Assembly (NCBI GenBank): GCA_033442325.1
Contig: JAWQFM010000016.1
Coordinates: 130,097-194,096 of the forward strand
DNA length: 64,000 nt
Reading direction: 5' to 3'
Origin: Salpingoeca rosetta
Taxonomy: Eukaryota; Protista; Choanoflagellata
Shown here: piece by piece, positions 10,998 to 13,900 of the stretch
Layout: each line of letters starts with the position of its first letter
Position numbering within the stretch: the first letter of the stretch is position 1
Notes under the pieces: generated by a model
Databases searched by the model: none
What the model was told of the DNA's origin: nothing
Seen by the model: only the letters and a program-made list of their open reading frames with translations
Translations under genes and position numbers: made by a program

Positions 10998-13900
10998 ATG
11001 CTGAAGGCGTTTGTGGTTGCGGTTGTGGGTCTTGTGGCCCTGGCTACGCTCGCGGCTGATGCCAAGGTGCGTTCGTGTGTGTGTGTGTGTGTGTGTGTGT
11101 GTGTGTGTGTGTGTGTGTGTGTGTGTGTGTGTGTGTGTGTGTGTGTGTGTGTGTGTGTGTGCGCGCGCGTGTGTGTGTGTGTGTGTGCGCGTGTGTGATT
11201 GAACGAGTGCAGGAGAGAAGCACATTGATCACGCTGATCACGCTGATCACGCTGATCACGCTGTTGTGTCGTGAAATGTTTTGTTCCATGACAGTTCACC
11301 AGCAGCGAGTACTGGGGCGAGTACAACACCACCTCTGGCCCAGTCGAGGGCAAGATCAACGTTCACCTGGTTCCCCACACCCACGATGACACCGTACGTC
11401 CTTGCCCGTGGGAAGCCTTTCCTTTTGTTTCACTCGTAACTCACACTCACACAAACACACACACAAACACACTCACACACAACACTCACACACACACAAA
11501 CACACACACACACACACAAACAAACACACACACACACACACTCACATCCACTCACACACACACACACAAACACACACACACACACACTCACATCCACTCA
11601 CTGACTCACACACTCCCTCAACCACATCAATGCGCACTGCTTTGTACATTGCAGGGTACGTGCACTTCAACAGCGAGGAATGTGTTGATCTTGTTTGACT
11701 GCCTTGCCCAACTGGTTTTGTTCAGTCCAGTGTTGCTCCGCTCAAACTCATCCACATCACCCTTTCATAATACGCACTCGAACCTCGTCCATCCGCCCGC
11801 CCTGAACCGGGTCTTGACGCGCCTTTCCAAAGGCTGGCTCATCACCGTTGACCAGTGAGTAGAGTCGCCGTCGTCGTCGCTTGGATGATGTGGTGTGCTG
11901 ACCGCAGCATGTCCCTGATCTCTCCATTTTTTCTCACCTTTGCATTGTGTTGCATTGCGCTCCATCGTGTTTGCATCATAGGTACTACACCACTGCTGTC
12001 AACTACATCCTGGACACCGTCATGACCCGGTCTGTTTCCTTGCGCTGAATGGGCGAGTTCCTGTTTCACGATGACGATGCAATATTTGCCGCGTGTGGCT
12101 TGTTCAATTCCATGTTTAACTGACATGCCTGCATGTTGGCATGCCTGCGTTTTTTCCTTGTGCCCTGGTGTGGTAGTCTGGAGGAGAACCCCGATCGCAA
12201 GTTCATCTACGTCGAGACGGGCTTCTTCGAGCGCTGGTGCGTCGTGGTGCCTTGTGGTCTGCTGCTGGTGATGTCGAATAGGGCACAACCCCACCATCCA
12301 CAAGACAATATGATGCACGATCGAATAATACGCACACACACACACACACACACACACACACACACACACACACACACACACACACACACAAACACGCACA
12401 CACACACACACCCACACCCACCCACACACACACACAGGTGGATTCAGCGGAACGAGGAGACGAAGAAGCGGTTTGCAAAGCTCGTCGCCAACGGGCAGCT
12501 CGAGTTCGTCAACGGCGGCTGGTGCATGCACGACGAGGTAGCATATCGGATCATGGTGGTGGTGGTGGTGGTGGTGGTGGTGTGGTTTGCCTTGTGTTGC
12601 GTTGTTGGGGGGAAATAGGCGTGTTTGCGACTGGCACATAGCAAGTGGTCCGTGCAATGTCCGCCCTACACCACCCTCACATCAGCCTTCTACACCGCCA
12701 CACTGCCCTCCTGCACCACTAACCTCCACCACCACGACCACGACCTCCACCACCATCACCACTACCTACATCACCATCATCACCCTCATGACAGGCGGGC
12801 CCGCACTATGTTGAGATGGTTGAGAACACGGCGCGCGGTCACCTCTTCCTCAAGAAGAACTTTGGCATCGCTCCAAACGGCACTTGGCAGGTGCGCAGTC
12901 GACGCGCGCTTGTGTTTGCGTGCGTTTGTGGCTGGGGTGGAGCGGGATGGAAGCTGAAAGCCGTACAACACGCATGTGCATGTGTTTTTCTCTCTCACAC
13001 GCACACACACACACACCACCACCACCACCACCACCACACACACACACACACCTACCCCCACTTTAGATTGACCCGTTTGGCCACACCAACACGCAAGCGT
13101 GGCTGATTGGGCAGTACGCTGGCCTGCAGTACCTCTACTTTGGACGCATGGACAACCAGGACTTCAACATGCGCAAGAACCTGTCGTCCATGGTTGCTCC
13201 AGATGTTCCCCGCTCCCTGGAGTGGGTCTGGCAGGGGTCAAAGACATTCGGAAGCGAGTTCCAGGTCGGTTGCGTGGGAGCGTTGTGCTGGTGGCGGTTG
13301 TCGCTTGTGTTCTCGCTGCTAGTGTGTCTGTGATTGTTTTTGTGCGTGGTGTGCGTATGTGTGTGTGTGTGTGCATGCGACCGGGTAACAGGTTTATTGT
13401 TTGCACATTTCTTACTTAAGCTGCGCATTACACATGACTGACACGCTCACTCACCTTCTATTGGTGGTGGTTAGACGTTCACCGGCGAGCTGTACGGCGG
13501 CGGCGGCGGCGGTTATGGCGCTCCCAACGGCCTCGACTTTGATGGCAGCGACAACCAGGTTTGTGTCAGTGCTAGTTGTATTTGGTGGTGGTGTTGGTGG
13601 TGGTGTTCATGGTGTTGGTGGTGTTCATGGTGCTGGTGGTGTTGGTGGTGTTCATGGTGTTGGTGGGCAAGACCACGATTTGCAATCCTTGCTTGTTTGT
13701 TTGAACACCCACCCTTCTCATGCAAACACACACACACACATACATACACATACACACACACACACACACACACACACACACACACACACACACACACGAG
13801 CAGGTGCAAGACGACCCTCGCCTGCACGACTTCAACCTGGACTCGTTTGTGGAGACGTTCATCTCTGCCGCAAAGGACCAGGCGCAACACATGCGCACGG

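Follow-up and report, generated by a model that had tools for sequence, protein, structure and literature searches.

The window analysed here is a stretch of 64,000 nucleotides (nt) from the choanoflagellate Salpingoeca rosetta (contig JAWQFM010000016.1, positions 130,097 to 194,096), whose genome of 55.4 Mb in 68 contigs is intron-rich. On its forward strand it carries a gene of about 17 exons, the product of which is predicted to be a lysosomal-type GH38 class II alpha-mannosidase. Between exons 2 and 3 of this gene stands a lone G, at position 11655 of the window. An earlier note, made from the letters of the window alone, had claimed that this single base is an exon in its own right and is needed to build the active-site motif HxHxDxGW. 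The mature RNA junction, DNA contigs and a partially spliced intermediate support that claim, and we hold it to be highly probable that G11655 is a true exon of one nucleotide and is included constitutively. The features concerned are listed below, where P0010 denotes an intronless GH38 alpha-mannosidase of 1108 amino acids from a metagenome-derived assembly, X42 is one of the RNA runs used, and a slash in a sequence, here and throughout, marks a splice boundary.

10998..18171, forward strand: predicted lysosomal-type GH38 alpha-mannosidase gene, about 17 exons (tblastn with P0010, Pfam matches)
11295..11393, forward strand: exon 2, with a phase-0 end in CAC ACC CAC GAT GAC ACC (HTHDDT) (sequence; RNA depth and joints)
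11394..11654, forward strand: upstream intron, 261 nt, GTACGT...CAG (X42 reads joining 11393 to 11655)
11597..11603, forward strand: branch-like CACTGAC, about 50 nt 5′ of the first acceptor (yUnAy scan)
11655..11655, forward strand: highly probable one-nucleotide exon G, first base of the Gly codon in HTHDDT-G-W (RNA joint, intermediate)
11656..11832, forward strand: downstream intron, 177 nt, GTACGT...AAAG, phase 1 within the Gly codon (RNA reads)
11814..11818, forward strand: branch-like TTGAC, 15 nt 5′ of the second acceptor (yUnAy scan)
11833..11854, forward strand: exon 3, 22 nt, GC TGG CTC ATC ACC GTT GAC CA followed by GTGAGT (joints 11393 to 11832 and 11854 to 11982)

A lone G within the active-site motif

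Exon by exon the gene is co-linear with P0010, whose residues 65-1105 map piecewise onto 11322 to 18159 in tblastn searches, with 48% identity in the large exon. The GH38N family (PF01074) is matched with 30.9 bits (cut-off 25), and the other Pfam families matched are Alpha-mann_mid, Laman-like and GH38C. PF07748 is over its cut-off with 83.5 bits; PF09261 (22.5 bits), PF21260 (21.7 bits) and PF17677 (16.9 bits) are single-exon matches, each under its own cut-off. The motif reads HSHDDTGW in P0010, with no residue missing (...VPHSHDDTGWQVTVDQ...), and it is likewise intact in the spliced translation of the S. rosetta gene, as HTHDDT-G-W, where T-G-W forms part of HxHxDxGW at the beginning of the N-terminal catalytic domain.

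Exon 2 is followed directly by GTACGT (11394-11399) and exon 3 is preceded by ...CCAAAG. The gap between them, 438 nt in total, contains TTGTACATTGCAG/G/GTACGT, that is, an acceptor CAG at 11652-11654, the G at 11655, and at 11656-11661 a GTACGT identical to that behind exon 2. A canonical AG acceptor and GT donor flank G11655, and branch-like sites are plausible for both introns, with yUnAy matches 46-54 nt before the first acceptor and a single one 15 nt before the second. The resulting sizes of 261 and 177 nt are similar to those of the gene's other introns (127-228 nt). In the tblastn alignment, T88 of P0010 falls on 11391-11393 and G89 on 11832-11834; given canonical GT-AG ends, this placement leaves exactly one nucleotide and no residue unaccounted for. 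The coordinates that the earlier note had given for exon 2, exon 3, CAG/G/GTACGT and CACTGAC proved correct to the base when checked against the sequence, and its argument that adding G11655 restores ACC-GGC-TGG agrees with homology to P0010, which demands exactly one extra nucleotide.

We also estimated how often such an arrangement would be met by chance. The string AGGGTACGT occurs once in the 64-kb window, counting both strands (128 kb), against 0.23 expected; scaled to one strand of a 438-nt intron, the expectation comes to about 8e-4. For the more general YAGGGTACGT, 77 occurrences were counted across both strands of the 55.4-Mb genome, or about 3e-4 per 438-nt intron on one strand. The GTACGT hexamer is itself over-represented (64 occurrences versus 27 expected), an excess consistent with its being a favoured donor.

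Support from RNA and DNA reads

The read analysis covered 11230-12325, with a CA-rich repeat at 11435-11620 skipped. Two raw-read RNA runs of 2026 (X24 and X42) were used together with an older run available as contigs (X36), which was taken to be RNA from its small contig set and its fully spliced contig; joints were listed from three reads upward. The mature joint from 11393 to 11832, which carries a one-base shift ambiguity, is observed in 31 reads of X24 (15 distinct starts), in 62 reads of X42 (29 distinct starts) and at a contig depth of 238 in X36. The mRNA junction predicted in the earlier note is accordingly present in three RNA data sets: the message reads ...GATGACACC-G-GCTGGCTC..., with exactly one G between ACC and GCTGG. 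A frameshifted joint lacking the G (ACC/GCTGG, 11393 to 11833) was not found at the listing threshold of three reads, so that inclusion of G11655 is essentially constitutive, and no alternative splice product at G11655 was seen in the RNA runs.

Over 11234-11434 and 11621-12325, DNA contigs from run X1 (depths 279 and 120) agree with the window letter for letter, showing 0 differences and 0 gaps, although X1 is possibly the source of the assembly itself. As this identity extends across both exon boundaries, no G has been dropped at either of them, an error that the earlier note had wanted excluded.

The internal acceptor was captured in eight reads of X42. These reads, on the gene's strand, align from G11655 into the unspliced downstream intron as far as about 11747, and immediately 5′ of 11655 their sequence is ...ACGATGACACC, with which exon 2 ends. 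The molecules behind them lack 11394-11654 but retain GTACGTGCAC..., as predicted for the intermediate of the first step; the interval from 11655 to about 11747 in X42 is the sole intronic RNA coverage in the examined stretch of about 1.1 kb. The evidence for use of the acceptor at 11654 is thin, coming as it does from these intermediate reads in one run. Template switching between the two GTACGT copies was considered as a source of such reads and rejected, given that a read without the extra G would align from 11656 and not from 11655.

Proposed splicing pathway and alternative explanations

We propose that the segment between exons 2 and 3 would be removed as two ordinary GT-AG introns in series. 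In the first step, the donor ACC/GTACGT at 11394 would be spliced to the acceptor CAG at 11652-11654, joining exon 2 to G11655. This would create a new 5′ splice site, ACCG/GTACGT, in an RNA that would read ACC-GGTACGTGC. In the second step, the regenerated donor at 11656 would be spliced to the acceptor AAAG (11831-11832), yielding ACC GGC TGG. Mechanically, the arrangement would amount to a recursive splice site offset by one base, hence the one base left in the mRNA. With only one base between an acceptor AG and a donor GT, simultaneous recognition of both sites is sterically unlikely, and sequential use is therefore expected, as at recursive splice sites. The earlier note had raised ordered or recursive-like splicing as a possibility, and the X42 intermediate fits removal of the upstream intron first; no reverse-order intermediate was seen in the RNA runs. 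The mature junction, the correctness of the DNA and the intermediate of the first step are shown by the data; that removal in this order is the only route, and that the donor at 11656 is used, we infer. Of the partially spliced molecules and lariats for which the note had suggested looking, the former were found, as the eight X42 reads, and the latter were not.

Several observations weigh against this interpretation and should be kept in view. The eight intermediate reads all lie at the same place, with a loose part of about 11-12 nt and an end at about 11747, and they come from one run only, so that they probably stem from one to a few molecules. X24 contains no intermediate reads at all, and no lariat or branch-point reads were seen in the RNA runs. 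Use of the donor at 11656 is deduced from the intermediate and the product taken together, and the skipped repeat leaves part of the upstream intron unobserved. The mature junction, taken alone, fits a single intron with GT..AA or TA..AG ends equally well. Finally, the closest relatives found in metagenome contigs (L046, L071 and L073) have no intron at either position, and cross-species conservation lends no support.

The single intron just mentioned is the likeliest alternative, although we consider it very improbable. It would span all 438 nt with non-canonical ends (GT..AA, 11394-11831, or TA..AG, 11395-11832) and be removed in one step, leaving the internal CAG/G/GTACGT as a bystander, or as an occasional cryptic acceptor giving dead-end transcripts. 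Read mapping indeed called the mature joint as 'GT..AA, both 1', and the rarity of the intermediate is in its favour. GT-AA and TA-AG are, however, outside the usual splice-site classes (GT-AG, GC-AG and AT-AC), and the X42 reads show the internal acceptor in use. Such an intron would moreover contain a perfect acceptor-G-donor composite bearing exon 2's own donor hexamer, for which the chance expectation is below 1e-3. A canonical pair, GT at 11394 with AG at 11832, is also available, yet its product ACC/GCTGG was not seen.

One may postulate instead that the upstream intron of 261 nt was absent from an allele carried by the culture used for RNA sequencing (ACC G/GTACGT...), in which case the eight reads would be plain unspliced pre-mRNA with a phase-1 intron. 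A single phase-1 intron is the arrangement seen in two paralogues and three homologues, and the studies that produced the RNA runs are not those that produced the DNA runs. No such joint occurs in the X1 DNA contigs, however; 86-96% of the words of 10900-13900 are present in DNA runs of five studies, and the intron flanks are single-copy in the genome. The allele present in the window would in any case still need the one-nucleotide exon for a working enzyme, and we regard this explanation as more improbable still than the single intron. An assembly or sequencing error would mean that one G, either the last base of exon 2 or the first of exon 3, is missing from the assembled sequence of a gene with a normal phase-1 intron. 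Such an error is conceivable given that both boundaries adjoin a G, but it is contradicted by the X1 contigs, with 0 differences and 0 gaps at both boundaries, and by intermediate reads in which ACC is followed by GG-TACGTGCAC from 11655 and not from 11394, so that we assign it a negligible probability.

Intron positions in paralogues and relatives

To place the one-nucleotide exon in context, we compared the intron positions around the motif with those of other GH38 genes. Two Golgi-type GH38 paralogues in the same genome have a phase-1 intron within the Gly codon, the position of the downstream intron 11656-11832. The paralogue on C12 (L001, G000:C12, about 990-1200; motif HSHNDPGW) reads ...GAC CCA G/GTACGC...CAG/GC TGG, and that on C8 (L003, G000:C8, about 1290-1525; HTHVDPGW) reads ...GAC CCA G/GTCCTT...CAG/GT TGG. 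A third GH38 paralogue, on C1, has no intron there.

When metagenome contigs were scanned with a degenerate pattern for VPHTHDDT plus a following G, 46 loci were returned. Of these, 44 are GH38 genes in which the T precedes a Gly codon, either intact or interrupted by an intron; the other two (L050 and L055) are not GH38 at the matched place. The codons ACN GGN TGG are uninterrupted, leaving GW intact, in 41 of the 44, and the remaining three (L045, L061 and L062), which are more distant homologues, have a phase-1 intron within the Gly codon. At none of the 46 loci does an intron immediately follow the T codon.

The three closest relatives that extend to the N-terminus, L046, L071 and L073, all have ACN GGN TGG unbroken, and introns occur elsewhere nearby. 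In L046, which shows 80% identity over residues 21-71, there is an intron after QYYQSE, and in L073 one lies in the second His codon instead. The N-terminal intron positions of the S. rosetta gene (window 10998-12540) differ almost wholly from those of L046, L071 and L073, a comparison that suggests rapid intron turnover in the group. Three further relatives (L019, L020 and L021) stop short of the N-terminus, and a search with a short protein query returned only matches that looked plant-like, as judged by eye. We rejected the idea of an ancient intron common with animals, since the Anolis lysosomal alpha-mannosidase has the motif in one exon.

Taken together, these comparisons make the one-nucleotide exon look lineage-specific, with a downstream intron that appears to occupy a recurrently used position and an upstream intron that is apparently unique to this genome. 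The phase-1 intron of the Gly codon may be either an old intron or a product of a favoured insertion site (CAG/G). As to how the arrangement arose, one possible route is that a new intron was inserted one base upstream of an existing donor; another possibility is that a G was lost and the gene was then rescued through a cryptic AGGGT, as has been proposed for Fusarium.

Two other origins were rejected for the upstream intron. Its CA-rich low-complexity core (about 11439-11626) resembles many CA-rich repeats of the genome; only this core matches elsewhere, while the flanks are unique, and an introner or mobile-element origin was therefore discarded. Duplication was likewise discarded, as the two introns share only GTACGT and one 13-nt near-match.

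Candidate one-nucleotide exons in dynein genes

Five dynein heavy-chain paralogues in the same genome (L079, 770-1530, at G000:C7:1251619-1252379; L080; L081; L084; L083) contain candidate sites of the type AG/N/GTRAGT exactly where one or two nucleotides are missing. Four of them, all axonemal heavy chains, have one exon ending in ...TTC AA/GTRAGY and a next exon that begins AG/GC TCN GAT; relative to an intronless paralogue (...VVFNCSD...), two bases, a C and then a T, are missing. The gap holds AG/C/GTRMGY and then AG/T/GTAAGT, in the right order, which would make two consecutive one-nucleotide exons, and no other AG/N/GTRMGY site is found in it except one extra match in a GT repeat of the C23 gene. 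The fifth paralogue has a single AG/T/GTGAGT. The candidates, all proposed from sequence, are as follows.

C7:1251922 and C7:1252133: candidate one-nucleotide exon pair
C21:1107385 and C21:1107176: candidate one-nucleotide exon pair
C20:946014 and C20:945775: candidate one-nucleotide exon pair
C23:471068 and C23:471316: candidate one-nucleotide exon pair
C3:817136: candidate in the fifth paralogue, single AG/T/GTGAGT

A protein search for transcript-derived dyneins of the same species returned nothing above 74-80% identity. The repetition of the pattern across dynein genes supports our reading of the GH38 locus, and it is likely, judging by these gene sequences, that the organism handles one-nucleotide exons routinely. 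The candidates suggest that both the annotation problem and the underlying biology recur in this genome. A broader proposition, to which we would give roughly an even chance, is that S. rosetta has a genome-wide habit comprising many one-nucleotide exons (at least nine candidates in dyneins), recursive-like resplicing from 5′ to 3′, and introns gained beside existing junctions. If true, this would provide a natural system for studying how the spliceosome recognizes an exon that holds no exonic information, and for studying intron gain.

Comparison with known one-nucleotide exons

One-nucleotide exons are already known in plants and fungi, and the GH38 case joins a very small class. The earlier note, which had named the Arabidopsis APC11 exon (Guo and Liu 2015, PMC4674806), was right that they are very rare, but more cases are known than it named: a one-nucleotide microexon in VPS55, described by Yu et al. 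(2022, PMC8831610) together with the conservation of the APC11 exon across land plants, and the one-nucleotide exon of Fusarium CYP621A (Nelson and Syed 2026, PMC12940212). In our literature searches there was no report of a one-nucleotide exon in a choanoflagellate or any other nuclear genome outside plants and fungi. What the GH38 gene adds is an example from a protist, together with a first-step intermediate caught in reads.

The likeness to APC11 is close, in that both have one base between two GT-AG introns that is constitutive, that the reading frame requires and that annotation overlooked, and the APC11 authors also proposed recursive-like removal of one intron after the other. The base is an A in a ubiquitin-ligase subunit in APC11 and a G in a glycosidase active-site motif here. 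The APC11 exon has been conserved over hundreds of millions of years, whereas the GH38 exon is absent from the closest relatives found. The kind of evidence differs too, as mutated minigenes were used for APC11 and a step-1 intermediate in reads is what we have for GH38.

CYP621A shares the identical core AG/G/GT, and its G likewise helps to encode the Gly of a conserved motif, which is PKG in CYP621A and HxHxDxGW in the GH38 gene; also common to both are a total gap about twice the usual intron size and a mature junction supported by reads from the Sequence Read Archive (SRA). Unlike G11655, the CYP621A base is the middle one of its codon, its introns are much shorter, it is conserved in 20-24 orthologues, and no intermediate has been reported. 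VPS55 likewise has a one-nucleotide exon, with a strongly conserved GTRAGT as its donor; its exon is used alternatively in some plants, with intron-retention isoforms, a behaviour not seen at G11655.

Zero-nucleotide recursive splice sites, or ratchet points, are known from long introns of Drosophila (Duff et al. 2015, preprint 10.1101/006163; PMC6110457). There, too, an acceptor abuts a donor, and splicing begins with the upstream part and thereby rebuilds a 5′ splice site, although the evidence for these steps at the GH38 locus is thin. Ratchet points leave no nucleotide behind, whereas at the GH38 locus one G between AG and GT stays in the mRNA, and they divide introns of tens of kilobases rather than a gap of 438 nt made up of two introns whose sizes (261 and 177 nt) are usual for the gene. 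A single-base exon is also found in the mitochondrial cox1 of placozoans (PMC5436844), where the introns are organellar self-splicing or trans-spliced ones and not spliceosomal.

An exon of one nucleotide is too short to accommodate exon definition or exonic enhancers, and its acceptor and donor overlap the footprints of their recognition factors, so each verified case constrains models of splice-site recognition. Stepwise removal has been proposed in the plant and fungal papers without an intermediate being shown (PMC4674806, PMC8831610, PMC12940212); an intermediate at the level of reads reveals in which order the two steps take place, something those papers only proposed.

Other features of the 5′ part of the gene

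A single frame of 188 codons (11292-11855) runs without a stop through exon 2, the two introns with the lone G between them, and exon 3. Selection for such a frame across both introns was considered and rejected, as 17% of composition-matched resamples are stop-free too. Gene predictors are bound to mis-annotate the enzyme, as one of them may read through this interval and add 146 residues inside the catalytic-site motif.

The other exons at the 5′ end were placed as follows.

10998..11066, forward strand: exon 1, start codon and signal-peptide-like stretch (RNA loose ends, translation)
11982..12029, forward strand: exon 4, 48 nt (joints 11854 to 11982 and 12028/9 to 12176/7)
12177..12236, forward strand: exon 5, 60 nt (RNA joint; next exon from 12438)

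Loose RNA ends before 11293 in X24, X42 and X36 read ...GGCTGATGCCA(AG) and match the 3′ end of exon 1, and a loose end behind 12239, reading GATTCAGCGG..., was located at 12438, the start of the exon after exon 5. Tracts rich in (GT)n or (CA)n lie in introns at window positions 11075-11200, 11439-11626 and 12335-12395. They show a polarity, with (GT)n directly behind the exon-1 donor and CA-rich stretches toward the acceptors.

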